Shown here: positions 3,327 to 62,152 of the stretch, one piece after another
Numbering within the stretch: position 1 is the stretch's first letter
How the letters are laid out: each line of letters begins with the position of its first letter
Assembly (NCBI GenBank): GCA_965644295.1
Contig: CBFFRP010000091.1
Coordinates: 1-64,000, forward strand
DNA length: 64,000 nt
DNA from: Paraphysomonas bandaiensis
Lineage: Eukaryota; Protista; Chrysophyceae
Direction of reading: 5' to 3'
Position numbers and translations under genes: made by a program
The notes under the pieces: generated by a model
The model's database searches: none
Seen by the model: the letters and a program-made list of their open reading frames with translations, nothing else
What the model was told of the DNA's origin: nothing

Positions 3327-6982
<3,656 letters not shown>

Positions 6983-9424: not shown

Positions 9425-11444
9425 TCACTTGAACCTTGATTTTTTTCTATCATTTTTAGTATTTGTTGTGTTCTTTTTTCTCTTCACAACTCTTTTACTG
9501 GTGGAACTCTCCGAGGTATTATTAGTCTCCACCGTAGTTATTGGTCTAAACGCATCCACCAGCAATTGTACAGACGATTCGTCCAGTGGATACTTACGCT
9601 TGGCTTTTGATGTCTGATCAAAACTATAAGTTCAGATATGTGCAGGTGTGAATGCTTGGTACGCAGGTCTATGCGCTATCACCAGTACAAATGCAAGTAC
9701 TATTGTGTGGCAGCAATACACTGACTATACCTGCAGAAAAAATATTGACGTATCTTGAGATGAGACTCGGTGCTGGTTTTTCTTCGCGTGTTGAGCACCC
9801 TGAAATAAAATGTTACGATGGATATATAACTTCGTGCACGTTGCTCTATTATAGTGTGCTGTATAATGCTGCGACTTGATACGAGTATACACACCTCCAT
9901 ATAACCATGTTGACTAGCTTCCAATCTCAATGACTTCGAAAGGAATTGTGACTCCGCGATTTCTGTCCACGCATTGCGCTTGGTAACTCTGTTAGCACTT
10001 TCCTCTCTATAAAAGGTCACGAGCTCTTCCGGATCCGAACTTTCTGCCTCTTCCCAGTATGGCATTATGATTACAAACATCAGTACCTTACGTCTTTCCT
10101 CTGCAGTGGCCAATAGGCCGTGCATGCGAGCGTACATGTTGTGAACTATAAGAGGATCAAATGGAGGATTCGCTTCGTAACATCCATGCGTAGGTGTGAA
10201 TGAGTCAAAAGAACCAACACTACCAAACACAGTATCTGTATCCGGAAAGGCTGAGCAGTATGTATAAGCTAAATCTTGGCCTGCTATGACATCATCTATT
10301 ACTGCTACACATATGAACGCGAATTGTAAATACTGGCCAATGCAACTGTGAGATATATCACTACGAAAGAGCACATATAATCAACGGAAATATAACACAA
10401 AACCACGAGATATCGCATCTTATACATCATCATAGACTACAACCCATATACACCCCCTGTGACCTGGATAGTAGCAATTCATTGGCGACGCAAAACATTC
10501 CCCCTTAACCCCGAATTTAGAGACCAGTACATCCATACACCGAGGGTGGATAGCTGCCTGATTGCCACCAGCCTGGTAACAAGCTCCTTGAGCTGTAAAA
10601 ATAGATTAACTACATACTTACACTACAAGTTGAAGCAATATAATATTAGTACAAAACAACAGAGTATACCGCAGATAACGTCTACAGATACAGTGGCCAT
10701 GCATTAAACTTCACGGTCGATTATATTTTGACGAAGGAGTACACGCACCTGAGGAGTATCGCACGAGAAGCTTAAACATGTTGCTAAGCAACTTAGTACG
10801 CTCCCCCCCAGCGTTTTTGTGCAGCATATCCAACTTCCTGTAACTGTCGCTATTTATTTCCACTGCCGTATCCTTATATGTCAGTCGGATTTTGGTATCA
10901 CCATTGGGTAGTTGTATCGTAGACTGCTTAACGATACTGTACTTCACATCTAATGATAGCTCAGATATCTTACGTGATAAAAAGGTAGATTTTTCTCCAA
11001 TTGTACGACAAATGGCTGCAGCATTCTCCACCGTGGCCCCATTCTTTACTAACTTTCGACAGAGTTCATAATCCACAGTGCACGCTGGAGTATCTGGTAG
11101 GACACTATCTGTATTCGAAGCTCCTGAAATTGCTCGCTGATGCCATAGCCACGACTCAAAGTGCTAATCGTATGTATTTAATATAAGAGATGAGCATATA
11201 CGCAGTGCACCGCAGTCACCTTATACCACCTCTTGGGGTTAAAGTATGGAGTACACAGCTCCTGAAACACTCCACTCAAACTACTAACCGCCTTATGTCT
11301 TGCTGCCTCTATTTCGACGTATCTGATTGGAGGAGGCTCTGTGTTGGACAGAGACAGAGACAGCTGAGGCACGAGAGGGCCGCTGGTGCCGTACATCTCA
11401 CTGGACATACTCATAAGGAGACCATCGATATCGTCAGAGGACAT
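9425..11444 (-). CDS. PCIF1/CAPAM-like cap-specific adenosine N6-methyltransferase domain protein, multi-exon
   Basis: Exons encode GGNQAAIHP..MDVL...GVKGECFASPMN, YCSAFPDTDTVFGSVGSF and catalytic-type YEANPPF. Lys-rich C-terminus; stop at 9425-9427. Confidence 0.85.
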
Positions 11445-11843
11445 GATGATAGAGGGGGGGTGATGGCGATGTATGTGTACAGTGCTGTGAGGTGTGTGTA
11501 TAGACAGCTACAGCGTGTTGTGTTGTGAGGGTCTGTCCTTTAAGAGCATGTTGTTCTGCTGTCTCACTGCTCTGTACCATGCACAGTGGACGTACTGTGT
11601 GCTATGTGTACCAAGTGAAGGAGTGGAGTACAGCGGTACATCTCTTCTAGCAGTACTGTACTAGTGAGCAGTACACATATGTAGCACCAGAGCAAGTATA
11701 CACAATATACAGCAGTACAGTACAGTAGTACAAGAGACATAGCAGTACATTCGATGAGAAGTCCGCCGGTGAGTGTTCCACACACTTAACACACGCATCG
11801 TCTTGACCCTCATCCACTAGTGCCCCATCTATCGTATCTAACC
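11445..11843. promoter_or_regulatory. Putative bidirectional promoter between the PCIF1-like gene and the PDF-HutF gene
   Basis: 399-bp gap between divergent start codons, rich in GTAC/CAGTA and containing one GTATAC, like other upstream regions in the window. Confidence 0.5.
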
Positions 11844-14181
11844 ATGCCCATTCGATCGATTAAAACCCTGGGGTCTCCCGTCCTTCGAGTGGCGGCTAAC
11901 AGCGTCCCCAAGTCGATGTTTGGCCCTCAGCTGAATAGTCTGGTGCAGGATATGATCGACACTATGAAACACGCCAATGGGGCAGGAATTGCAGCCCCTC
12001 AAATAGGCGAACCATGGCGGGTGTTTGTGGTTCATGGGACGGGAAACAATCCCCGATACCCGTACAAACCAGCCATACCGCTAACCGTCTTTGTCAATCC
12101 AGAAATAGAAGTGCTAGACCCCACCCCTATGCATATGATAGAGGGATGCCTGAGTGTACCTGGAATGAGAGGTAAGGTGTCCCGTGCTGCTAAGGTTCGG
12201 TGTCGCGCTCTTCGTCCCGATGGAACTCCGTTTGTACTGAGGGCAGAAGGGCACGCTGCAGGCACACTGCAGCATGAGTTAGACCATTTGAATGGCACAT
12301 TGTTTCCTGATTTGGCCTCGTCGGACGGTTTAATGACGTGGGACTCCTTTGATGAGCATCATAAAAGTGATTTCTTTAAGTATGCTGCTGAGATTAATAG
12401 ACTGTACCCCACGCCGTTAACGTGGGAACTAGGTGGGCCAGAAGACAGTGGTAATGGAAATGTGGGATCAGCATTTGAACTCAATAAAAGTTCTCAAGTC
12501 GAAGTCAAGGATTCATCAAAAAGCACCACTTCAGCTACTTCTGGAAGAGCTTCACCTGTTGTAACTTATAAAGCTGATTTGACTTGGGTAAATAGTTCGT
12601 TTCAACCGAATGTTTACGTGACAGTCACCGATGGGAAAATTACTAATATCACCACTGACAAAGGGATAGGAAGTGATTCAGGTACTGTTTCGCAATATGG
12701 TAGAAGCAGAATGTGCCATGGGGTCTTGCATTCATGTTGGATATTCTTCATTATGTTTTTGTCTTTTGATATATGCATGTGTTGTAGATGTTGTTACACT
12801 ACCTGGCGTGGCTCTAACACCAGGCTTCGTCAACGCGCACAGCCATGCGTTTCAGAGAGCTTTGAGGGGTAGAGGGGAGACCTATCCCACGTCTAGCACA
12901 GGCGAAGCGAAGCCCTCTTTTTGGACTTGGAGAAATGCCATGTATAGTCTCGTGAACGACTTAGATTCAGTAGAAGCATTCAAGCAACAGACCAAACAAT
13001 GCTTTGTCGAAATGGCGAGCAGTGGTATTACCACTTGCGGAGAGTTTCACTACTTTCGCCATTCTAAATCTTCATCTGAAGAGGATTATGCGATGGACAA
13101 TGCGGTGGTCGAAGCTGCAAGGGAAGCCAATGTCCGGTTAGTTTTGCTCTCTGCTTGTTATCAGAGGGGTGGGTTTGACAACAGACCCTTGAATGAGAAC
13201 CAGCAGCGATTTAAGACGGCCAGTATGGACAGATATTTAAGTCAGCTAGACAATCTTTCGGTGTATATGGATGGTTCATTCGGTGAAGGAATAGGTATGC
13301 TCCTGTATATACTGTGCGAAATGTGAATGTGCTTTACATAACTCGTGAATAATACTGCCATTTAGGAATTGTTGTGCATTCTTTGAGAGCTGTTGACGTT
13401 CCCACGTTGCAAAAATTATCCAGAGAAGCTAATACACGAAAGATACCATTACACATACACATTGAAGAGCAGCCGCTGGAGATAGAGGATTGCCTTACGA
13501 CACACGGAGTGACCCCGATGAGACTTCTGTTGGATTCACTTCCCAGAGCAGAAATTCAGAATATATGTGCCGTACATTGCACCCACTCTGACTCCGCCGA
13601 TCTAAAGGAGTTCATAGAGGCAGGTGGAAAAGTGTGCATTTGCCCCCTCACAGAAGCCTCTCTTGGGGATGGGGTCTTCAAATCTCTTGAGTGTACTAAA
13701 GGGGTGGTTAGTCTGGGCTCAGATTGCAATGCTCGTATCGACATGTTTGAAGAGATGCGTTGGTTGGAGTACTCCCAGAGGTTGCAAAGGGGACAACGAG
13801 GAGTATTTGCATCTGTCTCTGAAAATGAGAAGGGAGAGTTGGCAAACCAGTTGTTCGCATGCGCAACAGAACATGGCGCCCATCACCTAGGTATATGGAG
13901 TATATAGTACATGATAAATAGCATTCCATGTTTTAAACTTCTTATTTTTATACAACCATGGTACTGGTTTAGAGCTTATTTGCCTCATAGGTGTCAATGC
14001 TGGCACTCTGGCTGTCGGAAAATGGGCAGACTTTTGCTTATTGAATCTATCTGCCCCTGCTCTGAAAGCTTCCACTGCTGGGGATCTTATGGGTGCAGCT
14101 GTGTTTGGAGGGAGTTCTGAGGGCCTTGTAGTTGATACTTGCGTAGCAGGAAAATGGACAAAAAAGCACTTGCAGCATTGA
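11844..14181 (+). CDS. Peptide deformylase - formiminoglutamate deiminase (HutF) fusion, exons 11844-12681, 12788-13294, 13366-13890, 13991-14181 (686 aa)
   Basis: PDF motifs GAGIAAPQ, EGCLS, QHELDH. HutF-type motifs PGFVNAHSHAFQRA, SFWTWR..MY, EFHY, HSLRAV, HIHIEEQ, TEASLGDG, GSD, EEMRWLEYSQRL. Three phase-1 GT-AG introns join the frames into 2061 nt ending in TGA. Confidence 0.9.
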
Positions 14182-15416
14182 TTTAGGCAAAATATGGTAG
14201 TTAATGTTGAAAATAATAGCTTTTGACCTATGATAGATCGCTACAAGTGCAGTAAATGCGTACAATTATTAGCACGCTGAATATCAATGAATGTCATGTT
14301 GGACACGTACTTATGATTCGCTTAGTGCTTACTTAGCATTATACTTACGAGCTTCCTTGAAAGTGATTAGTTAATGACACAGACATAGATAGTTAGTATG
14401 TCACAATATTTACGTCATACACCGATATAACTAACCAGTATTTAATAGGGGTCTTAGCATATATTTTGAACGTTCAATTTAGTGAACTTTTCGATATCAT
14501 ACGTAGTTGTCATCTTTATCTCATTTTCCATTATAGCCGAGAACTAAATTTCTTAACTGGTCACACAGATTTCGTCTGACCATATGATAATTTACGATTT
14601 CCTATATGTTACATTCTACTTATGACATACTTATATTAACAGTGACTAGAACAAAATATTAGAAGCCTATTATCAGAAGTCTAATAACATCACTGTAGCA
14701 AATATGGTGGTGTATTGATCCAATATGGTCCCTAGGTAGTAAAGAAATAGCTAGAACAGTGAAGTGTTAGTGCGTTACTTCTTAACCTATATTACCTGTT
14801 CATATGAAATGGAAGATAATGCTATCAGCTACTCATGATGTCAGACACTACGAGTAGAGTCATTACGATATCTATGGTGCGCTGTAGGTTACTCATTCCT
14901 TCATATATCTTTCATTTTGAGACGACTACTCGATAAGACACTGTATAGTTACCTTTAATCGATTCTATCGTGATATTAATATTCCCTATCTACTCCTGGA
15001 GGCGATGTCCACAGTGGTGGCTTGATATATGCAGTTGATATCCAGACATCCCAACACAGACCTGCATGACATCGTCCTCAGTGAGTCACATGCTACAGAG
15101 CCGATAATGGGACAAACGGGCCGCATCAACCATTGTTATGAAAGTGGTACAGTACAACTACTGTACAATGAGGGTTATACTGCTGTAGTACCCCGTATAC
15201 AGCCCACATAGCCGTTGGGATTAGTCGTTGGAGTGCAGGAACACACACATATATATACATGCATCCATACATGCCTGCACCTCCCTCATCTCTTGCCTGG
15301 TCGCATCATATTCCTTGCAACACAACATCACCTCACCTCATTTTGATAGCTACATATATACCAACATATACTTCTAATTGCGAGCGGCATTGTCTTCTGT
15401 ACTTGTTCCTACTGCC

Positions 15417-18400
15417 ATGACCTCTGCTAATCGGCAAACTCGCATTCAGCTCCTGATCAAGAATCCTGAAGGAGTCGAAGAGTCGGAGAAGAAGGCTGAA
15501 AAAACACTTTCGCTGAGTGTCAACTACTATCAGAAAGACTTTCCATCTCTTGTTAATGCACTTCAAAGAGATTTTAGGACATCTAAAGAAGATCCTTATT
15601 ACGCCATTGACCAGTTGAAATATAAGAGCCTCAAAGACGGGGCCTTCGTTGTATTCGACGAAAGTAGATTCGAAGAAATCAAAGATGAAGTTTTATCCAC
15701 AGGAAATATTAATGTCATACGCCTAAAAGTATGTCTGTGATGTTATAGTGTCTGCATTTATAACTGTTGAATGCGCAGGCTTATGTGAGGATGACTGAAA
15801 CCGAGCAAGTGTATGCGGGGTGCAAGAAACTCCGCCAGTCAATAGAAAGGCTATCTCATTATGATGAAAACACATCAGACAATACACGAGATTCTACTTT
15901 TTCTGGTAAGTCTACCACACTTACTTATGTAGCGGCCCTATAGTGTGAAATACACAGTGTTTACGTGCATTAAAAGCAGCCTATCTAATAGTAATCGTTA
16001 GGGTCGTCAAGGCGTTGTTCTCCATTACGTCGTGCATCTCCACAGCGACGCTGTTCTCCTCAACGAAGAGGATCTCCTATGTCCCAGCGTCGCTCGTCTA
16101 CTGTTTCAAATGCGGTGTCAGGTACAACAGCAAGTGCTATTGCAGACTCTGGTAGAGCTTCGAGTCGTAAAACTCGTCCTTCAAGCCCTAGACTTCTTCG
16201 CAAACCTTCTCCATCTCGACAGGCTCCGAGTCCGTCGTCAACACGTCCACAATCTCCGGTAAAACATCTTCACACAGCTGTCGTGAGTAATTCGAAGTCT
16301 TCGGTGAAAAGTTCTGGGAAGCAAGCAGCAGCTGGATCCTTGACTCCTGGAGGCTTTATTAACAGGCCTATTCGAACGAAGGACAGAACGTCTCCAACTA
16401 AGACTCCCAAAAAGACTGGAGCTACAGGTATATATATGACCCTCAGGTTGAAGATTGTTATATATATGTCCTGTGGTGCATGACTAAGTGCTTGTAGTAG
16501 AGACTCGCTGAGTTGGTGATAGTATAGTATTCAGTTTATGTATAATAGTTTGCTTATACTATCCACTGTATAATATGCTTATTAACAGAAAGCACTTTGA
16601 AAGCAGAGAGCAGTACATTTCCCGAAGATGGTACTGCTGAAGAGCCCGATGAGATTGCAGCTGCTCTTGACTCTATGTGCCTCACGGACATTTGTATGGA
16701 TGACGAGGAACCAACGTCTAACATTTCTTCTAAAAAACTATTCGAAGATGAAACGGAAGGAATTACTGGTAAAAGTATTGAGGAAGATATTAACCATAAA
16801 AAGGTTGCTGAGGGGGACAATAACTGTAACAATCAAGAGCTAGTCGGTATTTGCGATGAAGTCAGTGATGTATATTCTAGCTGCCCGGCATCTTCTCGCC
16901 CAACTGATGATGATTGTATTTTTGATGACCTTCCTGAGGGTGAAGAACCCCCAGATATGGGACATAATGTGTGGCGAGAGAGTATCGGTTGTGGGAAAAC
17001 TGAGTTACAGGAATATTATCAAGGGACTGGCGACCACAAGGCAACAGAGAATAGTTTAACTGATACAGAAGCTCCTGCTAATAGCATTGTGCCATCCATG
17101 AGCCAAGATGAATCCTCAAATAAGTCTTGCAACGACACGCAGCAGTTCGAATGTGGTACTACTGATTCAACTCCCTCTAAAACTTCTGGAGTTGTCAGTG
17201 CCATGGATGCCGTCGATAGCATGACCACCTCAGGTTTGAAACATCATAAGATATCTTGTCCGTAACAGCTGTAATAAGTGTAGTGGAATGCTAGAAACAC
17301 AATATGTAATACATATTTTAAGTCTAACAGCTCTTCACAGATATAGTTATGTCTGAAGACTTACTGGATCCGGTTACCCCGTCTGAAAAAACTCGTTCTC
17401 GTTCAGCTTCGACAACTAAAAAGCGATCTCCACGTGCGTCACGTCGTGACACATCTGCTACTAAACCTAAATTGGATACTAAGCAGAGAATGAAAGAATT
17501 AGCTTCCACAATGACTTCGTCTTCGTCTGCAGTCAAGGCGTATAAGCCAAGTTACCTTCAGTCTACTAGTTCAAGTAGAGGAGGGATTGATATACCGACG
17601 GCTCAATGCCAGCAAGTATGGCAGAAGAGTCTGCGCTCTGATAATTCAAGTACACTTGATCGTATGAAGAGTCATACCCATCAGTCCAAAGGTCGAAAAG
17701 CGACTAACTCTAGCGTGGGAGCCCTGAAGGCAATGCGCCATGATACGAAAGGGCTGGAAGAAGACGGTCGTCCTTCGTATGCAACCATGACAGCACAGTG
17801 GGAATTTTTGCGAGGGCAGTTTATGGAAAACGACAACGAGAAGCTGGTAAGTTGGAATTACTGAAGCGTGGAATTAGTTAAGACCAATTTAACGTTTTTA
17901 CCCCTATTAGTGTTGCAATGCAACAATATCATATGTTTCTACAGTTTTAGTGTAAATATGACTGTTTAGGAATGGGCTATGGCTGCGAAAGAGGGTGGCG
18001 AGAAAGCATATAAGAAAGCGTTTAAGAAGTCCGAGATGGCTGAAGACCAGTAAGTCATCTCAATATGCTCCATAGTATATATTTCTGGTGTGCTAAATTC
18101 GATATAGGTACTACAAAGCTCTTTATGATATTGATGTTATCCAGTCAAAGCTACAACTCATTCAAGGGAGTGACCTCGCTAGTATACTGAAGGTAGCGTA
18201 GTAAACATACATAATTTCTAGTCTGACATGTGTTCTATAGGAAATGACATCATGTGAATCTACACTTCGTATAAACCCTCATGATCCGGACAGCTGCGCT
18301 ACCGTTAATTTCCGCAAAGAATCATTGCGTGAACTTGTTGAGGGAGACCTGAAAGGAATATGTTGCGTCTCCTTGGATTCCAAGCTTAAAGATATTTATA

Positions 18401-26203: not shown

Positions 26204-27999
26204 CTAAAACACTGCGCTATCTTCTTCCAAAAAATATCCTTCGGGTCCTCCGCTGCTGTTGAACGACTTTTTATTCGATCTACTACTCATGCTATCAGAA
26301 TACCCATCCACAATGGAATCTAATGACTTTCGGCCATAAACGCTACCATCCAGCTCCAATGCATCCTCACCAAGTCGCTTCCCCACATCGCGAAGGCGTA
26401 GGATGGGGATGCTATATAAACAGCAAGCTAATCCCAGAACAAAGCACGCGACAGTAAAACCTCGTGTTCCTGTGAAAAGAGAAAATTGAGGATTGAACTT
26501 TATCGCAAGATCCATTCATCACAAGTATTACTCACTCAGGCTTCTGAAAATAAGAAACGGGTATTAACATATCTTACCTCCACCGCTTGCAACCTGCAAA
26601 CCTGGCCCCAATATAGGCCCTATCGCAAGTCCCACATATATACTCAGCTCGTATATGGTACATGAGTTGGATGATATCTCAAAGCCTTGCCACTACAAAA
26701 TAAATTTCATGAATAGGTTGTATACGGATGTTGTACGAGCCATACAGCAGTGTCACCAAAACAATATATACAAAACTATTTTACCTCAGCTATCTCTGCT
26801 ACCAATGTTAACACTGGAGCTTGCATACACATGAGCCCAATTCCTATACAACCGACCAGTACAGCCAGCACATAAACGCTTATTACCCAAACCACGCAGC
26901 ACATAGCCAGGCCCGTTACAATAACACCCGAATACATTAAAGTTCGACTTCGTGAAGGGAACTTCGAGCTTCGGAGTTGAAGAGTGTACTTCGAAGATGA
27001 TGTCTGACCAGTAATTGGTGAAACTATTACTCCTGCCAGGTAAAGCAGACCGACCAACCCTCCCTGTACTGTGATACTGTATCCGAATTGCCGACGTATG
27101 TATACTACCCCATAAGGACACACAAACCCTAGTATTATGCCTGTTAAAATGCAACACCCTACAGTTATCAATATATAGGAATTGCTTAACAAATCGCATA
27201 TAGATTGATTGGCTTTGGAGGCAAATCGCCATTCCGAAGGAAGTAGCCTTGAAGATACACTCTCACTCTCAATTTCCACTTCGTCTTCAACTTCGCTCAC
27301 TAGTATAGCGTGCCCATTGTTGTAAACCGTCATAAAAACCAAGGTATCCATTATCAATGGTACTAATAGTAGAGCATAGCAAGTATACGGGTTCGTATAG
27401 TCATATAATGCCCCTGATGCTGGTGCCCCAATCAATATCCCTAGCGTGGACGCTAATGATATGATGTACACCGCACGTAATCTACAGGACTCAACGTGAG
27501 ACATTGTGTTCAGAGCCATTCCACTAACATATACAAACGGCGACGCCAGTCCGTGCATACACTGCGCTACACACATGAACACATAGGCAACCGATATATC
27601 ACTCAGAGTTAGACCATATATTACACACCCAAGAGATATCGACAGCAGAAGTAATCCGTAAAGTAACGGAGTTTTCGGGCCCTGATTATCAACTGCACAT
27701 ACTGCTGCAGGGTATGACACTAAACATACTACAGGATGTAATGCAAACAGCAATCCAATGCCCATGGGTCCGAATTCGGCGTCAAAAAAATTGGGAAACA
27801 CAGGAATGCAAGATGTGAGAAAGAATCCATCGACGAAATAAGCGAGGCACACGATGAAGAGAATGTGGCAGTTCAAATATTTGTCTGATTCATTTAAAGG
27901 TACACTTTGAACATGCAGGTATGCCTCTGAGTAACGCGATAGGCTGCGCGTGTGCCGGACAGCCAGCTCCGCACCATCTTGAGAGGTATATCTCAGCAT
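26204..27999 (-). CDS. Major facilitator superfamily transporter, multi-exon
   Basis: 407-aa ORF with about 10 hydrophobic helices and MFS-like motifs (IGLLFA, GILIGAPASGALYD). Further exons (YVGLAIGPILGPGL; GFTVACFVLGLACCLYSIP) end at 26204. Start tentative. Confidence 0.8.
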
Positions 28000-36600: not shown

Positions 36601-39600
36601 TGATATATTGCACAATGTCCTGTACTCCACAGCAATACACTACAGTAGACTGTTTGCCAATATAACCGTACGCGAAACTGTTCACAGTGTACATACGATA
36701 TGTTTTAATCTGGAGAGTACGATGCTATGCACCTCTGGTTGGGACCACGTCAGAAGAGAGCAGATCGTTGTGTGGGATGTAGCGGTAAGTTTTCACACCG
36801 CGACTGTTGAAATTGTAGCTCCGCATTGTCGACCTATATATTATACGACCGAGTTAGCTGTTCTTTTTTGTTCGCGTAGACGTACCTAATTTTGTGATGT
36901 AACTGCGACAGACGCTTGTTCAAGTTAGCTCGGGTACTTCCAGTTCAGCTCGCAAGACTTCCGCATCTTCTTCTCTTGTCGTTGCTCGACAGCTATCTGA
37001 CTTTCATATATCCAAACTGATGTTTTCTCCTTTCCAGGAACTGTCACTGGTTTCCTGTGGACGTGAGAATATCAGATTTTGGCGAGTTAAGAAAGGTCAC
37101 CTTCCTGGTCGACCAGTGCAACTGAATGAGTTTTCTCGGGGCTATCTCTTTACAGACGTGGCTTATGTTAATCTCCCACCTGTGGGATCAGAGGTTAACG
37201 ACGCACTCCTTCCCTGTGTGTTGGTATCTTCGTCGATGGGTCTCCTGCTACGGGTTGATTGTGGCCTGGAGCAGGTGGTATGTGCGTACACATTGCACAA
37301 CGGACCTATCCGTTCGTTGTCCGTGAATGCGGGATATTGTGTTACTGGCGGAGATGACTGTAGGATGAGAATATGGCCGTTGCACTTTACTGACTTTCTA
37401 ATGGAGGCCCATCATGAGGCCCCAGTCACTCACACGAGTGTGTCGCATGATTTAAAGTTGCTTTCTGTGGGCACAGCTTCTGGAACTCTTGGCATATTGG
37501 ATGTCACTGATCACAGGTATTTTCAATTAATATTATATTGTGTGTTTTATGATGTTCGTATAGTGGGTTGTTTAGATTTTATTGTGTTGCATAGTGTAGT
37601 CATCATATATTATTTTGGCGAATATCGATGCCTGATCTTCCACTATGTTTTAGATACTGGACAGTTTTGCGTTCACATGTTGGGGCTGTTGTTGCTACAT
37701 CGGTACGTCCCCCACTGGGGGAAGAATTTATGACTCTTGGTGCAGACAACACGGTTCGTCTATGGGACTGTCTTTCCGGTCAACAGAAATTTGAGTTCGA
37801 TTCGCCACACGATATTCCCCTCTGTGGAGTCTACCATCCGAACAAGCATATTCTTTCCTGCGGTTTCAGTAGCGGAACCATGAGAGTGTTTGATGTACAG
37901 ACAACTTCCACACTCTATGAGCGCTCGGAGCAGCCCCAGTTGTCCTCAGCTATAGTGAGGGTATTGTATTCGCATACAACATTTAGTACGTCAAACAGCA
38001 CCCAGTTGTGTCAGTTGCGGCTATATACTCTTTCCCTGCGGGGCAGATTGACTGTATATGACGTAAATGACAATTATACACCAATTCGATCGATAACACT
38101 TACCGGTAATCCGTGGGAAACAGCGGGTTCAGATGTATCACTCCTTCGGCACGCTGCCAGTCTGCATATGAGCTGTTCTCAGGATGGACGCTTATTGGCT
38201 GTTTCCTGTGGGTCTGTATACTCCCTGTGTGTTTTTGATGCTGCAGAGATGGTACCTGTTTATAAAGGATCTTCTCTATATTCAGGCACCAGTCCTCGGG
38301 CAGACCTAACAGCCACTTATATGGGAACCACGCAGCAATCAAGTGCAACACACATGAATGCGAAAGCGGCTTCGAATGTACCGCTGTTAGGAAATGTCTC
38401 GAGCGTGATTAACGGTCTGCTGTTTTGCGCCGATGAAGACCGCAGTAACACTGAAAATACTGATGGTCATGTGTTACTTATTGTTACTGACAAGAGGTTT
38501 ATATCTATCGACATCACTGTTCAAAACATGCCCGCAAACACCCCAGCTGCTGTTTTGGAAAGTGCGTATGCCAATTCTCTTTGTGCTGATGATGTAAGCT
38601 CCAGACGCATAGAAGGAGGAATGCAACCTGTTTCAGGTTCAATTACGCGTGATCACACTTCCGGTCTTGTATTTATGGGGGTTAATCGCGCGCCAAAGTT
38701 ATTGTCTGAAACAAGTAAAATGGGTACCAAGAGCAATACTCTTGTTCCTGTAGTAGGGGATGCCTTGGCAATTGTAGGAATATCGTTCCGCCGTGTGGTG
38801 GATAGCCATCGTTTCCGCCCTTGTCACGCAATGCACACGACTCCGATGCAGGTTATCACTGAGCTACCCGGCGATAAACATATTCTGTCAATTTCGCAGT
38901 GTGGTCCGGCCAGTAATCGTCTAATTGTGACTGACTCATCGGGCTGCGTGTGTGTATGGCATATGAAAGAAGATAGGATAGGGAGGCTAAAGGACAAAGC
39001 TTATGGAATTGATCAAGAAAACGATGATATATTTACACCTGATGAGGCTACATATGGTTTAAATGACCTGAATAAAGATGATAATGCATTGCAAAATGAA
39101 GTGAAAGTTTCACATGATGGAAATGAGACGATTAATCTGAAGGATCAATTTGAGTCCGAATTTGAAACTGGTGACACATGCCATTCTAACTCCAAATTAG
39201 CTGCTAGTTTCAAGCATACCTCTGATGCAACGTTATCAAATGCGCAGTTATCGAGTAGCATGGCGGATATGTATTGTGACTCAGATGAGGGCACAAGCGA
39301 TGACAAAGGATCATTAGACATCGAAACCCTCACTGTTGACCCCCTGCGGCCTCAGGAATATTCAGAAAGTATTACCAACTCGAAGTATCTACAGAGGTCA
39401 GAGGTGGAAGATGAAAAGCAATCTGGTACCAGTAGTAGCACAGTTACTTGGAAACAGAGTGTGAAAAGCAAAGGTTTTAAAACTTCTGACTCCAGGGTTT
39501 CTGGAAAGTCTACGACGAAAACAACTCTTGGAGATAAAGTTATCTGTCAAGCTAGAAAGAGCACCATCTCTAGCCGAGAGAAATTGTCCATAAAAAAGTC

Positions 39601-42600
39601 CAGTGTGACTTCAAATTCGCGTGCTTCTTCGAAAATAACAGAAAAAGACGCTCTGAAAGCTTTGCCTGTAAGTCCAGTTTCATCTGCCCCCGTCAACGCC
39701 AGTTTTGGGAGTAATACAGAATATGTTGGAAAACAAATGGAAAGTGTGAATTATAGTAGTCACTCTATTGACGAAGGTTACGGTTCTGATAGTGACAATG
39801 GATCTAAAACAGAGAGTGAAGATAAACCGCCGGGTATGACCTATCTATTGTTTCTTGAGCTGCGAATTGTGGATATGTCTAAGTGAATCGCATTACCTGT
39901 ACATTGCAAAGTTATATGCGAGGTTGACGATGATTTGTATGTATAGGTTTGGTACAGGAACTACCCTCTTATGAAATTTCGGCTGCTGTGTTGCCGGCTA
40001 GAGTTTTGGCACAGAAGATATCAAGTTAGTACAGTTGCTATGGATACCAACTATCTGCTACGCTTTGTATGTTACATTTCATTCGATCTATTGTTGCACT
40101 GCACCAAATAATTTAATTTTTGATTTTAGCGAAACCCTCGTTTTCTCCGGCAACGAGATCTCTTTTAACAACCAACGGCAATGAGGTGTGGCTTCGTAAT
40201 TATATTTGTTATGCGAATTTTACTGTATAAATTTTAGATGTCCATCGAAAACATCGACTCTAGATCTGGTTTTGCTGTCCTTTCCCCCCCTGCCACTTCT
40301 ACTGGTAGTCTTGACTGCTCAAATATATTGTCTGAGAGCCACGTGCAACATATACAAGCCGCTTCTTTGTCGCCATCTGGCCTGTTTGTGGCGGCTATTG
40401 TTGCATATTCGAGCGCCAAGAACAATACCAGTAATACAGTACCTGTTCAGAGTAGTACAACCACAGGAAAATCATCTGAATTGCATGTCTGGAGCTGCAG
40501 CAATGTGGATGAAGAGGAGAGTGGTTGTGTGTGGAGGCATCTTGGTGTGGTGGCCCTTCATACGTCGAGTGTAGATTCATCGGCTGCAGGCCCGACGATG
40601 AATTGGTCGTTTGACGATTGCTTAGTTCTTCTTGTTCCCGTACCTTTACCTTCCCAGGGAGACAATGCGCATCGGGATACGGAATATGCCCCCTCTGCAA
40701 GACATCTACATCAGTCGGGTGCTTTGTTGTCGATAACAAAGTGGGCTTCTGAGATGTCATTCGATGAGTCGATATCTCCGTCCCACACGGGCAATATTTG
40801 CAAGTCCATACCGCATATTGATATGCCTGGTTTACCTCTAGTGATTCCGTTCACTTGCCAGGTGGATGGTGTCATTGTGCTGCCGGAGTGGTATGGTGCT
40901 GGGGACTGTGGAGTTGTTGTATACGGTGGGTCTAAAATATCTCTCTTCGGGGTTTATACTATGGGGTCTGAAGTACACAGAGATGGCGTCAAACCATCAG
41001 TTCCGTTATGGATATCGGTAAGGCCAATATAAGCATCATGTTGTTGGTACATATCGACTCGATATCTAATAATCACATCCGCTAATTTATGTCTTGTAGG
41101 ATGCCGGCTCCAGTGGACCTTTTCTCTCGCTTCACCTGGCTGAGTACACACATACTCACACGATGTCGTCCTCTCATAGTACCAACACGTCCCTAAGATA
41201 CGGGACCATTGGCACAGCTGTGTCAACTCATACAAGTGATGCAATTGGTCACTCTTACAGTGAAAGCCTCACTGGGTGCCATTACGCGGGCACCGATGAA
41301 AGGGTATATGATATGTGCACCACCAGAAGAAGCCAAGCCATGCACAAGTCAAAAAATAGCTTCAAGTACTCTTCGTCGAGTAGAGTGAAGGAAACAGGTA
41401 CTATTTTATTGGTAATATTATTATTTAACTACTGTACTTGTCCCGCGATGCGGTAGTTTTTAAAACATACCCTTCTAATAATTACGTTTGTGACATACAG
41501 ATAATTTGGGGTACAGTTCCTGCGGGTGCACTGACGTTGTCTCTCACACATTTCCGCTCCTGGTAGCGCTGGATTCTTTGGGGTCCGTTCAGTGCTGCAG
41601 ACTAACTGTAGATGAGAGCGGTGACAGTACTTGCGTAAGCTGTATAGCGAAGGTGGCCGCGTCGCATATATCCGGGGTATGGTTCTGGAGTACTTGTGTG
41701 TTATAAATGGAGTATGTTTTATTGCTGACAACGTATGTTTGCGATTGTACTTTCACGCTTTTGACTGTATATTGTACAGCATAGATATTTTATAAATGTC
41801 GTGATAATCGTTGCATTCTTATCTTTTCTGTGTAGGCCCCTCGCACTCTTGCCCTTTCTTCTTCCGGGACGGTGCTTGTGATGGGGTCAAATAGCTCTCT
41901 GCAAGTATTTTTGGTCACAGTCAAGGACTCACCTGGAACTCCGTTTTCAGTATCGCTGACCCTCCATCATAAGGTACTCTTGTTGCGGAGTATTATACTG
42001 TGAAGTGCCGGTTCAAACTGTGTTGCATGATGTAGAGTGACTGCAATTGTTGTTCGCTAATTTGTGTAATACTGCAGGTGGTATCATCATTCCCATTGGA
42101 CAACGCGATCTTTACTTTGACACCTAATATTCCTAATATCGGATCGCACTCAACACTTGGTGTGTCCAATGTTGCCACGAAGGAGAAGGCGTATAAGCGC
42201 AAGCCGCAGCCAATTGATATGGAGTTATTAATTACTAGCTCACAGGGAGATATTGGGTAGGTAGTACGTAAGAATCACTTGTTTGCAATATAGTAGTAGT
42301 GTTGAGCTAATGCGCAAGTTATATATATATGATACCAACTTGACGAAATAGACAGTGTGCAACACTGACTCATTTTCATTTCACAGGCTTTACACGAGCA
42401 CGTCGAAAGCATATGATCGGCCCAAAGTAAATGTTTTGCGGTCTCCACCTCCCTATATACGAAAAGTGGATATTTGCACTATATACCCTTCGGATAGTAA
42501 TACAATGACTCCCATTGTATATGTACTGGATAAAAAGAGTGGAAGTGTAGGACTCGTAGACGCGACTACGGGCCGCAAGGTACGGGCATGAGCTATTCCT

Positions 42601-43866
42601 ATTGTCGTGGAATGGAAGTTTTTTTTATCGTGTTGATATGTGATGTGTTAGGCTTCTTGTCCAGAGAACATAGGTATCCACTCGTGCACGTGTATTGCTG
42701 CCTACGATACAATTCTCGCGACGGGCTCTCAGTGTGGTCGAGTGGCAATCTACAACGCCGTAACCATGACACTGCTCCATGTGACTTCATTCCCGTCGAA
42801 GCATACGACGCATAACATTTCCGCAGCACCTTCGAAATCGAGACCAGCTGCCAAATCCCCACCGATATTATCACTGAACTTCTTGTATGGAGGGAAACTA
42901 TTAGCTGTGTTACGAGCGGATAAGATGCTCTACATGTTACCCACGAGTGATTTCAACGCCTTTAGAGCGCCAGTGGGCGTGGAACTTGCGGAATCTGTAG
43001 ATGAATATAATATTGTCCCAATATACGGCGATTCCAGTTTGTGTGCTCTCTGTCGAGGTCATACTATGTATATGTATAGCACGAAATTGAAGCATCACTC
43101 CCACCCAATCCTTATTGGTCTATACAAGCTGACCACACAGTGCTTTGGATACAATACTCAACCGCGAGAGTCGGATGACATGCGACTGACGGCGAAGCAG
43201 CGTATGAATGCCGCCCAATTGACGTACCCAATACATATCCAGGCATTGTATATATCTCGTCCTACCATGCAGTTTGGTGAAAGTGTTTTGAACCTCACTG
43301 CTGTCGGTACCCTTCACTCAATGGGTTTCAAGTCAACGCAGTCGTTTGTGTGTACTGCAGCTTTAGATTTGTCCCAGAACGTTCTTTCGGAAAGCCCTCA
43401 CACGAAGGAAGAAATTCCGATGTACACCATTTTTCATCTCCCATCTCAACTGTTTACGTACAGCCAGAATAAACACGTATTGGGGTTGCTTTGCAGTTGT
43501 GGCGTCTACATTTTGGATCCACATGCCCTGCATTTATCTGCTAGTCAAGTACGAATGGGGATTCTTGAAGAATATTCTCGTGACCAGTGTGATGACGACG
43601 ATGTTTGGATACATGTCCAATCGAAGGAGAAAGTTCGAAGAAGCTTATTTTGCCACAAAGATATTCTGGCGGCGTCATTGAGGGGAACGTTTCAAGGATG
43701 TGTATCTAATTTGAATTCGTTGCCGTTTAGTCCACAGAGCAGGATTGCTCTTCCCTCTCACACCCACAATCATGGATTAGATACTGAGGAATGTATGGCT
43801 TCGTATGTATATGTGCCCACCGGAGAGTCTGCTACCCTTTACCAGCTCCTTCTATCTAGTCTGTAA
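33611..43866 (+). CDS. WDR90: WDR90/POC16-like centriolar protein (CFAP20-like N-terminal domain plus WD40 repeats), multi-exon
   Basis: N-terminus MVLSDAHKYPF...GNVTDAMDKSIGRAVIKIKGAVSANNYI..LQLEGQHVCIQ resembles the WDR90 N-terminal domain. LVSCGRENIRFWRVKKGHL, FLMEAHHEAPV and YWTVLRSH are WDR90-type WD segments. The C-terminal part is divergent and its exon structure is approximate. Confidence 0.8.
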
Positions 43867-47100: not shown

Positions 47101-49176
47101 CTACTTCTTCTGCATGATGACAACACCATGATACGGGGTGAAAAAGGGCATGAAAGGTACTTGACCGCGGAACCTGTTGTCCCATATACGCTCCATCATA
47201 GGTTCTCCCATGCGAAGCTGCTTCTCGCCCAGCAAGTGGACGTGATCCATGGCAAACCAAGCCTTGTGCAGCTTACTCTCCACTTTTCTGACCCGGCGCG
47301 AGAAATGTGGTAAGCAGTCGTCAAAGTTCCCCTCAAGAAAGAAGTCAGCAATGGCCACAATTCCCTGTCCCTTATCCTTGATTAGGTGGGCAGCATTGGT
47401 CATGGCACCCTGCTGGTTAGGAATCATTGAAAAGGAGTACGACATGGTAACGGCATCTACAGTTCCCACAGGAGGGAGCTTGGAAAAGCACGACTTGTCC
47501 GTAAAATCGGCTTCAACGACGGAAACGATATCACCAAGACCCATGGTATCGATACGCCTCTGGGCAATCTCCAGCAGTGACGCGGAGATGTCCACCACCA
47601 CGATTTTCTTGAAATACTTGCGAATAACTTCCACTGGGAAAAACTCAAGGTTGCGTGCAGTTCCTCCGCCTACATCTACCCACACCATGTTGCCCTCCTT
47701 CTTCAAAGGAAAAGACTCCATGAGGACTGGTCTAGCATGTAGCAATCCCTCACGGAAAGCATCGTAGCCTTCCTTTTGGTAGCGGTAAAAAGACTCCATG
47801 TCTTTGGCGTGTCCGGAAGCCTTGATGGAGCTGGCAATCAGAGGCTTCAAAAAGGGAAAAGAGACAACCTTCAAACCCGTCCACAAATCAGCTATGAGTC
47901 CTTTCGACTGGTTTGTGTCAATTCTCTCTTCATAGGCGACTTTGCAATCCTTGAGGTTGGCAATCCACGTGGTCCAATACATACCCACACGATCATCGCT
48001 GTCATCTACCTTCTCCGGCTCTAACCATGCCAAAGGAGCGGAGTGGACGTCATCTGCAAAAGTGCGCCAGAAGATCTTTCCGCGCACAGGATCCATTTTC
48101 CTGACTAAATGGGTGATCTCCTCATTAATCATGCGGTCAGTCATCCAATCCATATGGTCGAGAAGAGAAGCCACAGTAATATCAGTCTTGACATTATCTA
48201 TCGCCTGAAGCATTGTTCCGTGTACAAGGTGAAGTTTGTCAGCTTTCAAGTGCTTGCGCATCTTCAAGTAGTTCTCCTTCTTCAGGTATCTAGGACAATT
48301 GTGGGGTTGGTAGTACCCAAGAATATAGCCGGAGTAGAAGTAGTTATCGTTCACCAAATCAGTGTTGAAGAAAATCCGCTCGATGACCATGGCGAGATTG
48401 TTGGGGCGGTGAAGACCCAGAGCCATCTGACGCTCCGGGACACCAGCCAAACAGCACCCACCCCGAAGTAAGATATTATCCATAATCCACGCCAAAGAGC
48501 GGAGGCGATACTCGCACCGAGCTAGCTTGCTACGCAGGGCTTCAGGAGTAGTACCAGTCACCAAATCACGACGGATGAACCCCAAACCAAAAATAGGCAG
48601 AATCCAACGGAACAGAACGTAGGACATATTTCCGGAGGTTCCAGAATACATAAATGACTTAATTCTATGAACACCGTCATCCCAAAATTCCTGAGAGGCA
48701 GCCGACAAGTGAGGACGGATCTTGGAAGGGTAAAGCTCGCGGAGGAGCTCCATATTGGACTTGGAAAAGATCTCGAAGAACTGCTCGAAATCAATGTTCA
48801 TGATAGCAACTTTCTTAATCTCCGTAAGAGCAATCTGACAAGAGTTGAAGTCGACAGCAGTCACTCTAGCGCCCTCAATGATATAGTCGAGCACATTACA
48901 TCCCGCTGATGCGATAGTGATAACATGATCGGACTCATTGAGATCGAACACTCTCTGATCCATACGAGGGTCCTCCCAACTCACGTTATAGATATAGGTC
49001 TTGTTGAGGAACTTAAACATGAGCTTGTCGTGTATCATGGCGAAGAGCATGATGAAGGGGCTCAACGACAGCATCACTATGCTCAGGACAAAGTCTGCCA
49101 CTGGATTCAGCTGACTCTTGAGCAGCTTCCTCCTCGTGTACTCCTCCTTGGACTCGCCAGGGATAGGCTTGGTCAT
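47101..49176 (-). CDS. BTA1: Betaine lipid (DGTS) synthase, BtaA-BtaB fusion, intronless
   Basis: 691-aa ORF. N-half has BtaA/DUF3419 motifs YNVSWEDP, IASAGCNVLDY, VDFNSCQ, LLDHMDWM. C-half has BtaB SAM-methyltransferase motifs FYRYQKEGYDAFREGLL, WVDVGGGTARN, SYSFSMIP. Confidence 0.9.
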   Translation of the reverse strand: MTKPIPGESKEEYTRRKLLKSQLNPVADFVLSIVMLSLSPFIMLFAMIHDKLMFKFLNKTYIYNVSWEDPRMDQRVFDLNESDHVITIASAGCNVLDYIIEGARVTAVDFNSCQIALTEIKKVAIMNIDFEQFFEIFSKSNMELLRELYPSKIRPHLSAASQEFWDDGVHRIKSFMYSGTSGNMSYVLFRWILPIFGLGFIRRDLVTGTTPEALRSKLARCEYRLRSLAWIMDNILLRGGCCLAGVPERQMALGLHRPNNLAMVIERIFFNTDLVNDNYFYSGYILGYYQPHNCPRYLKKENYLKMRKHLKADKLHLVHGTMLQAIDNVKTDITVASLLDHMDWMTDRMINEEITHLVRKMDPVRGKIFWRTFADDVHSAPLAWLEPEKVDDSDDRVGMYWTTWIANLKDCKVAYEERIDTNQSKGLIADLWTGLKVVSFPFLKPLIASSIKASGHAKDMESFYRYQKEGYDAFREGLLHARPVLMESFPLKKEGNMVWVDVGGGTARNLEFFPVEVIRKYFKKIVVVDISASLLEIAQRRIDTMGLGDIVSVVEADFTDKSCFSKLPPVGTVDAVTMSYSFSMIPNQQGAMTNAAHLIKDKGQGIVAIADFFLEGNFDDCLPHFSRRVRKVESKLHKAWFAMDHVHLLGEKQLRMGEPMMERIWDNRFRGQVPFMPFFTPYHGVVIMQKK

Positions 49177-60902: not shown

Positions 60903-62152
60903 ATGGCGCCGGAGTTCTGGAAGAAGAAGAGAAGCAAAGACAGCAAGGGCGGGAGGGCTAACAAGAGACAAAACACTGGCCCAGGTCCCTCCCACACCCT
61001 GTCCCCTTGGTCCCAGTGCCTTACGATAGATTACCTGCATGCTCATGGGCGTCCTAGGAATTACACTATTTCTGTTGCTATTCCCGGATCGATATTAAAG
61101 AATTCATGTAAGTGTGGTAGCTGCTCCGATGAAAGCTAGTGATTGTTCTTTTGCAGTGACACAGGAGTTAAAAACAATCTTAGTCGGACAAATTGCTCGA
61201 TCATTGGCTTTATTTCAAGTTGACGAGGTATATCTGTGTTTGTTTTGCTTAAACACTTGTTCGGCTGATGACATGTGTGCAGATTGTGGTGTTTATGGAT
61301 ACCGGTTCTGAACAGGCTGGTGACCATGAAAAAGGTCCCTCTGCATTTTTCTCCCGCCTTCTACAGTATGCCGAAGCTCCACCACACCTTCGAAAAAAAC
61401 TTTTTCCAATGCATCATGATCTCAAATTTGCAGGATTATTGCCAACATTGGATGCACCTCATCACATGAGACGTGACGATCGCAGTTTATACCGGGAGGG
61501 TGTAGTTACGGACCGCCCGGCTCAGTCTGGAAAATGTTATGTAGATATTGGCCTTGGAACGGATGTTCTAATTGACCATGCACTGCGTCCTGGCGTTCGA
61601 GTTACAGTAGAAGTGCACTATGCTCCAGCTACTGGGCATGGCCCCCCTATTCCAGCCCGAGCCGAAGCTGTCTCCCCAAGCGCCCCTCGTGAACTGCACG
61701 GGCTGTATTGGGGGTACCAGACGCGACTTGCACGATCCTTGGGAGAAGTGTTTACGGGCTGCCCGTTCACATCACCTGCAGATGCTAAACAGGACTCGGC
61801 GCGTACACAGGGATACGATTATATGATTGGACATACAACAGAGAGTGCGACCCGGTGTCCTATGTCTGGCCCTGCAGATCAACAGCGACGTCAATGCTGC
61901 TTGGATGATCCCACATTCCAGCTTCCCCGTTGCAAACACTACCTTTTAGTCTTCGGTGGATTAAATGGCCTTGAGGCCTGTGTTGAGGCTGATGAGGCGC
62001 TCACAACAGCTGCGCGTGACGCCGATACACTCTTCGATGCGTATTGGAATTGCTGCCCCATCACTGGAAGTAGGTCGGTTCGAACAGAAGAGGAGCTATT
62101 AATGTCTCTATCAAAGTTAGTTCCAAGGATTAGAAGCTCCCATTCTTCTTAG
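60903..62152 (+). CDS. SPOUT1: SPOUT1/CENP-32 (C9orf114) family SPOUT methyltransferase, 3 exons
   Basis: YTISVAIPGSIL, GQIARSLALFQVDEIVVF, LLQYAEAPPHLRKKLFPMHHDLKFAGLLPTLDAPHH, GLYWGY, LLVFGG, GSRSVRTEE. Confidence 0.9.

Follow-up and report, generated by a model that had tools for sequence, protein, structure and literature searches.

A peptide deformylase fused to HutF in Paraphysomonas bandaiensis: a candidate bifunctional enzyme for completing histidine catabolism

The chrysophyte Paraphysomonas bandaiensis carries a real, spliced and expressed gene in which a peptide deformylase (PDF) is fused in front of a complete HutF-type amidohydrolase. The gene occupies positions 11844-14181 of the plus strand of the window, i.e. 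the whole analyzed stretch of 64,000 nucleotides (positions 1 to 64,000 of contig CBFFRP010000091.1, assembly GCA_965644295.1). We propose, with a probability of roughly 0.7, that the PDF domain acts as a non-homologous N-formylglutamate deformylase, which would provide a folate-independent route from N-formimino-L-glutamate (FIGLU) to glutamate. This reading is based on the finding that a metal-dependent formamide hydrolase is tied to HutF where HutG is missing.

Structure, expression and domains of the fusion gene

The gene consists of four exons on the plus strand. Exon 1 (11844-12681) encodes the PDF domain (amino acids 1 to ~197), followed by a linker rich in Ser and Gly and by the initial strands of the small HutF domain. 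The remainder of HutF is encoded by exon 2 (12788-13294), with the HxH metal motif at 12832-12858 as well as FWTWR and EFHY, by exon 3 (13366-13890), with HSLR, HIHIEEQ, VHCTH, and GSD, and by exon 4 (13991-14181), which contributes the C-terminal strands and a TGA stop. All three introns are bounded by GT..AG and are in phase 1; they measure 106 nt (12682-12787, interrupting the N-terminal domain of HutF), 71 nt (13295-13365), and 100 nt (13891-13990). Joined, the exons form an unbroken frame of 2061 nt for a PDF-linker-HutF protein of 686 amino acids. The ATG at 11844 was assigned as the start, since an in-frame TAA is located at 11787 with no in-frame ATG in between.

Public sequencing runs from four studies were aligned to positions 10400-15600 of the window, and all three splice joints were present in each of the four runs. 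One run is recorded as a polyA metatranscriptome; the other three, presumed to be RNA, are shown to be so by their splicing. Two contigs, X8 (2366 nt, 11831-14451) and X11 (2134 nt, 11792-14202), cover the gene from 5' of the ATG to 3' of the stop, and the transcript extends to at least 14451. The single transcript over three introns predicted in the preliminary description is thus borne out. Transcripts ending in or retaining intron 1, which that description had named as grounds against it, were not seen in the four runs, and neither was an upstream exon; the contigs show the presence of a form rather than its absence and do not mark the ends of transcripts, so that rare forms may exist. The donor of intron 1 in use is 12682, and an alternative donor at 12700 was rejected, as none of the four runs contained it. 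A merge of neighboring genes was likewise rejected, in agreement with the earlier reading, because exon 1 holds both the PDF and the first HutF strands and spliced contigs traverse the whole frame. Contamination or unspliced bacterial DNA was rejected on account of the spliceosomal introns and the eukaryotic neighbors.

No hut genes were found among the long open reading frames scanned elsewhere in the window, where the neighbors are ordinary eukaryotic genes, and a tblastn search with Rhizobium HutG gave no match in the window. A spliced and expressed PCIF1-like gene (9700-11529, minus strand; PF12237, E 5e-27) is positioned head-to-head with the fusion gene. Its transcript start at ~11529 lies ~260-300 bp from that of the fusion, so that the promoter between the two is probably bidirectional. 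Further genes in the window encode a kinesin motor (3657-6864), an MFS transporter (26776-27999), a WDR90/POC16-like propeller protein (37020-43866), and a SPOUT-type RNA methyltransferase (61268-62152; PF02598). An intron-free gene on the minus strand (47101-49176) encodes a 691-aa fusion of DUF3419 and a methyltransferase, an architecture that we take to be that of the betaine-lipid synthase BTA1. Positions 1-2300 comprise a repeat with a 12-nt period that is open on both strands; the long Pro/Thr/Ser mucin-like repeat on the minus strand is likelier to be coding than the 715-aa open reading frame on the plus strand.

Each exon of the spliced gene model was searched separately, and the natural database proteins P0155 and P0002 were used for full-length tests. 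Exon 1 matched PF01327 over amino acids 4-159 (E 5e-41, score of 140.4 versus a cut-off of 22.8) and exceeded the cut-offs of the NCBIfam PDF models NF001159 (143.1 versus 125) and TIGR00079 (108.2 versus 103.95). Compared to the motifs in PMC12690207, all three PDF motifs are intact: motif I (GAGIAAPQ, 11979-12002, amino acids 46-53), motif II (EGCLS, 12141-12155, amino acids 100-104) with the metal ligand Cys102, and motif III (amino acids 143-151) with His144, Glu145, and His148. The CD-loop signature NPRYPYKP (12048-12071, amino acids 69-76) is a mark of the hut-linked PDF clade described below. Directly before motif III, in a stretch that together with the motif spans 12258-12287, Gly140-Thr141 probably alters the wall of the methionine pocket. 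The predicted model of P0013 (pLDDT 96), a bacterial protein from this clade, adopts a PDF fold and superimposes on the Leptospira PDF 1SV2 with a Z score of 28.0 and an rmsd of 1.1 over 172 aligned residues.

In Arabidopsis PDF1B, the S1' (methionine) pocket is shaped by Ile42, Phe58, and Ile130 (PMC3101196). The equivalents in the fusion are Ala47, Val63, and Thr141 (motif numbering), and the place of Gly140 is taken by Arg or Ile in other PDFs. With these residues at pocket positions, the methionine pocket is probably smaller and more polar. Ala at the S1' position is also found in working PDFs, and it is the Gly-Thr pair that is specific to the hut-linked clade. All PDF motifs are kept, so that ordinary PDF activity may have been retained.

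Exons 2 and 3 obtained their top scores with HutF models in the profile search. Against the PDB, the top match of exon 2 was 3MDU, the HutF of Pseudomonas aeruginosa (E 2e-22); with exon 3, 3MDU came second (E 2e-24), slightly below the Brucella amidohydrolase 4F0L. The exon 3 motifs HSLR, HIHIEEQ, VHCTH, and GSD align to His206/Arg209, His232/Glu235, His269, and Asp320 of 3MDU, and the HxH, FWTWR, and EFHY stretches of exon 2 also align to residues of its active site. Together with His56, His58, and Arg82, these nine residues are all identical in the fusion alignment; their roles in metal and substrate binding we take to be those known from the work of Raushel. The model of an orthologous fusion (pTM 0.69, with a disordered, low-confidence linker) had 3MDU as its top fold match (Foldseek E 5e-34, TM 0.86 by target, rmsd 2.8). 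P0155, a protein from MMETSP1103 (taxon 36769, Paraphysomonas) that is 98-100% identical to the window gene exon by exon, passed the HutF equivalog model NF006681 (388.7, cut-off 362). With TIGR02022 it scored 362.1, which is below the cut-off of 413.05 but still far above every other amidohydrolase model. Based on family membership and conserved active-site residues, we infer that the HutF domain is very likely active on N-formimino-L-glutamate.

The preliminary description had pointed out that the protein starts directly at the PDF fold. This holds in that neither an extension nor an upstream exon was found, but a cytosolic location does not follow from it, as the N-terminus is basic and free of acidic residues. 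The first 35 residues contain four basic and no acidic residues, compared to 4-9 acidic residues in the bacterial operon copies, and several fusion orthologues carry short Arg-rich, presequence-like N-terminal extensions. For both reasons, a missing extension is no proof of a cytosolic protein, and the fusion protein may be mitochondrial.

Distribution of the fusion and of its PDF clade

A full-length search with an orthologue as query yielded 17 clusters at 90% identity in which the PDF precedes HutF; one cluster is the organism's own. The fusion is kept across distant eukaryotes and recurs in at least 16 further clusters. The named hosts are Paraphysomonas and the choanoflagellates Stephanoeca diplocostata and Acanthoeca spectabilis, and the rest are metagenome proteins; a partial fusion protein is present in Picozoa SAG11. 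The linker (approximately 12440-12557 in the window) is highly variable in length and sequence among the orthologues, ranging from ~15 to >80 residues. We also found the reverse order, HutF-PDF, on a Tara contig adjoining a WD40 gene (P0234), in a second cluster (P0294), and, frameshifted, on the long-read contig L086. In Diplonema japonicum, both domains are present as separate genes. Among long proteins with a PDF related to that of the fusion, the partner is HutF, apart from a few probable read-through calls with HutU or HutF-HutI as partner, whereas the partner in long proteins with ordinary PDFs is Fmt.

The PDF clade is marked by the loop RYPYKP and by an AGT stretch preceding QHE. Among the 150 best HMMER matches of an unbiased search, Gly-Thr occurred in 28 of 32 sequences with the YKP loop and in none of the 93 without it. 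In a quick tree whose outgroup comprised other matches only, the RYPYKP group fell on one side of a branch with an SH-aLRT support of 96, and the support of the eukaryotic members was 100. The signature residues are identical in hut-linked and unlinked copies. Searches of structures and literature did not return a solved or characterized member of the clade, and a plasmid search with the operon PDF returned only ordinary PDFs (~40-46% identity).

At least 583 stretches in GTDB matched the clade patterns, some of which may fall outside the clade, and the best 80 of these were examined for neighbors. All 21 Actinomycetota loci, which are mainly from Thermoleophilia and Acidimicrobiia and are related by descent, turned out to be hut clusters, with hutF present in the fetched DNA of 20 of them. 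The usual order is hutH-hutU-def-hutF-hutI with abutting starts and stops (gene identities checked on L045). Neither HutG nor M20 deacylases gave a match in the fetched flanks of 81 PDF-bearing loci or of the loci from the metagenome scan. The prediction that bacterial relatives reside in hut operons without hutG thus applies to the actinobacterial ones, but not to most myxobacterial clade members: 59 of the 80 loci had no hut gene in their flanks, 54 of them from Myxococcota, where the copies keep every signature residue and have varied neighbors. Several of the bacterial PDFs closest to the eukaryotic clade also lack an adjoining hut gene. Since the loci share descent, these counts do not represent independent cases.

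The metagenome scan provided a comparison with other PDFs. There, 28 of 63 RYPYKP-type PDFs were hut-linked versus none of 17 others; restricted to loci with flanks of 1 kb or more, the ratio was 24/44 versus 0/13 (Fisher p 3e-4, ignoring relatedness). The link occurs in the orders def-hutF, hutF-def-hutI, and hutI-def, and on one short contig (L056) def adjoins hutI without hutF. FtcD was found at one PDF locus only, as a possible alternative route: an FtcD-like formiminotransferase (L005:6055-6900, 196.5 bits, cut-off 221.25) lies ~1 kb after a def-hutF-hutI operon. Several actinobacterial hut operons contain an extra gene of ~265 amino acids, which was called a PhyH-family dioxygenase in one of them (L002:3622-4218) and has putative counterparts with similar N-termini in four others (L068:2488-3279, L070:7552-8340, L071:9186-10001, L074:843-1643). 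In a non-hut context (L095:8908-10582), a RYPYKP-type PDF is located directly 3' of aldolase-II and acireductone dioxygenase genes and 5' of a tRNA synthetase gene; the aldolase-II and dioxygenase genes belong to methionine salvage, a pathway that likewise releases formate.

Other deacylases were found beside hutF elsewhere. HutG is present in a Rhizobium hutF cluster, and an M20 gene immediately precedes hutF in Nonomuraea. For three of the four bacterial HutFs nearest to that of the fusion, M20 adjoins; the fourth is encoded within hutH-hutU-hutF (L088), the three others beside M20 only. COG0624/M20 had been predicted to be an alternative N-formylglutamate deformylase, but the Streptomyces avermitilis protein was inactive (PMC3223725, Table 3, case 20). 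In the oomycete Globisporangium ultimum, HutF is fused to an ArgE/DapE-like M20 deacylase (P0188, UniRef K3WGI3). The M20 part shares 30-32% identity with the M20 genes that immediately precede hutF in the bacterial loci L089-L091. This fusion is a parallel candidate for the N-formylglutamate deformylation step.

In the HutF tree, the HutFs of the forward fusions group with M20-partnered bacterial, oomycete, and diplonemid HutFs (support 98) and are separated from those of the actinobacterial operons. The reverse-fusion HutF forms a long branch that is also apart from the forward-fusion group, and a single clade for all PDF-linked HutFs was rejected (p-AU 4.6e-31). Tree grouping and AU rejection together indicate that the PDF is tied to HutF in three arrangements and in at least two HutF lineages. 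These results do not support an origin in which a def-hutF pair was simply taken over from Actinomycetota. The repeated tie could reflect either separate recruitment or the replacement of HutF inside an old partnership.

Proposed function and alternative explanations

N-formylglutamate, the product of HutF, is deformylated by HutG in Pseudomonas, whereas mammals use a folate-dependent transferase (PMC9002059). According to our proposal, the fusion would be a bifunctional enzyme that catalyzes the final two reactions of the five-step histidine pathway of the Pseudomonas type. The C-terminal HutF domain would hydrolyze N-formimino-L-glutamate to N-formyl-L-glutamate and ammonia, and the N-terminal PDF domain, with Cys102, His144, and His148 and with Glu145 as the base, would then cleave the formamide of N-formylglutamate to formate and glutamate. 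The chemistry of this second step would be that usual for PDFs, the PDF standing in for the unrelated HutG. The extra Tyr-Lys in the loop above the active site is predicted to be a possible binder of the substrate carboxylates.

Several lines of evidence from gene context and sequence comparison appear to favor this function. All 21 Actinomycetota loci with a PDF of this clade are hut clusters, and neither HutG nor M20 was found in the flanks fetched. The hut link persists despite the reordering of genes, other hutF loci hold a different deacylase, HutG or M20, in what would be the same role, and the PDF is joined to different HutF lineages with fusions in both orders. Ordinary PDFs, which serve as an internal control, were not hut-linked in any of 17 cases and fuse to Fmt instead. 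In addition, the Gly-Thr pocket change tracks the YKP loop, and Diplonema japonicum possesses both domains in unfused form. Against the proposal stand the many clade members without a hut gene nearby (59 of 80 GTDB loci and several of the copies nearest to the eukaryotic clade), as well as the bench failure of the analogous context-based prediction for M20 (PMC3223725). Moreover, ordinary PDFs rely on both a hydrophobic side chain at P1' and the peptide bond after it (PMC3101196); N-formylglutamate has neither.

In the first of the alternatives, the PDF serves histidine catabolism on another N-formyl compound, such as N-formylisoglutamine or N-formyl amino acids in general. N-formylisoglutamine is the spontaneous ring-opening product of imidazolonepropionate and has the alpha-amide that PDFs like. 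In that case, the PDF would deal with side products or act in scavenging, and a separate protein would clear N-formylglutamate. The hut linkage would be explained equally well, and the amide that PDFs require beyond P1' (PMC3101196), the def gene beside hutI on the short contig without hutF as well as the many copies outside hut operons would fit. However, both eukaryotic fusions join HutF, which yields N-formylglutamate, rather than HutI or HutU, and the hut operons would be left with a last step without a gene. We regard this explanation as unlikely.

A slightly more doubtful explanation assumes an ordinary fMet-peptide deformylase, either mitochondrial or of the accessory bacterial type, that became joined to HutF by neighborhood or shared targeting without a metabolic link. 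The three motifs agree with the updated PDF motifs (PMC12690207), and the nearest solved structures, with 1SV2 as the closest example, are working PDFs. Accessory PDFs are present in about half of bacterial genomes, the N-termini of several orthologues resemble presequences, and the myxobacterial copies stand alone, all of which would suit an ordinary enzyme. Yet it would leave unexplained why 21 of 21 Actinomycetota PDFs are within hut operons, why two fusion orders exist with different HutF lineages, why HutG and M20 are excluded, and why the clade has its own, probably polar pocket.

Paraphysomonas and choanoflagellates are bacterivores. This, the intact motifs, and the identical signature residues of hut-linked and unlinked copies would also agree with a dual role, in which useful fMet-peptide activity is kept, probably as the function in myxobacteria or else against formylated peptides of bacterial prey, and the enzyme is recruited for N-formylglutamate only where the PDF is tied to hutF. 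The pocket change common to all copies, however, suggests one altered specificity and not two, and we consider this the least likely of the alternatives.

N-formylglutamate remains the substrate that we infer for the PDF domain. In its broader form, which we likewise consider probable, the proposal is that a previously unrecognized PDF clade, which numbers hundreds of members and is spread over Actinomycetota, Myxococcota, and several eukaryotic supergroups, would have left protein maturation for free N-formylglutamate. It would fill hut operons that lack hutG and, fused to HutF at least twice, would provide protists with a folate-independent, formate-releasing histidine pathway.

Comparison with known systems

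PDFs are regarded as dedicated translation enzymes and antibiotic targets. If our reading is true, a clade acting on a small metabolite would clearly exemplify how enzymes are recruited to new tasks, and many 'def' genes would have to be annotated anew. It would also offer a testable candidate for the final reaction in hutF-type operons that lack hutG, for which the earlier candidate, M20, failed, and would add a third, folate-independent way to finish histidine breakdown in eukaryotes, among them abundant marine grazers. The two domains and the pathway are familiar, but the literature searched contains no description of the fusion, of the PDF clade, or of the proposed substrate. The preliminary description knew of no account of the fusion, and our search, with most subscription papers outside its reach, also found no report of a PDF-HutF fusion and none that places a PDF in a hut operon. 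According to a survey from 2025, the role of accessory PDFs is largely unexplored, and its text and the supplements examined contain no link to histidine or hut genes (PMC12690207).

The HutF domain corresponds to 3MDU (EC 3.5.3.13; TIGR02022/NF006681) in sequence and fold match, and the metal and substrate residues align. In contrast to 3MDU, it is eukaryotic, encoded by an intron-containing gene, and fused behind a PDF, and the nearest bacterial members of its lineage mostly pair with an M20 deacylase. The PDF domain shares the fold (Z 26-28), the three motifs, and an RYP-containing loop with the long-CD-loop PDFs, i.e. Leptospira 1SV2, Burkholderia 5T8Z/5HGW, Xanthomonas 4NT8, and the Pseudomonas class I type b enzymes. 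It differs from them in its RYPYKP loop, in AGT instead of ARV before motif III, and in belonging to a separate, hut-linked clade.

With HutG (EC 3.5.1.68), the PDF domain would have the reaction and the pathway step in common (PMC9002059), although the two are unrelated in sequence; it would act like HutG from outside the HutG family. The M20 proteins, ArgE/DapE-like or allantoate-amidohydrolase-like, take the same position next to hutF and are fused to HutF in Globisporangium, but they have a different fold, and the bench test of the S. avermitilis COG0624 protein was negative (PMC3223725). Finally, the Def-Fmt fusions of Exiguobacterium and Patescibacteria also join a PDF to a functionally linked enzyme (PMC12690207). 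Their partner, however, is a translation enzyme and their PDF is of the ordinary type, whereas the PDF of Paraphysomonas belongs to the hut-linked clade and has HutF as its partner.
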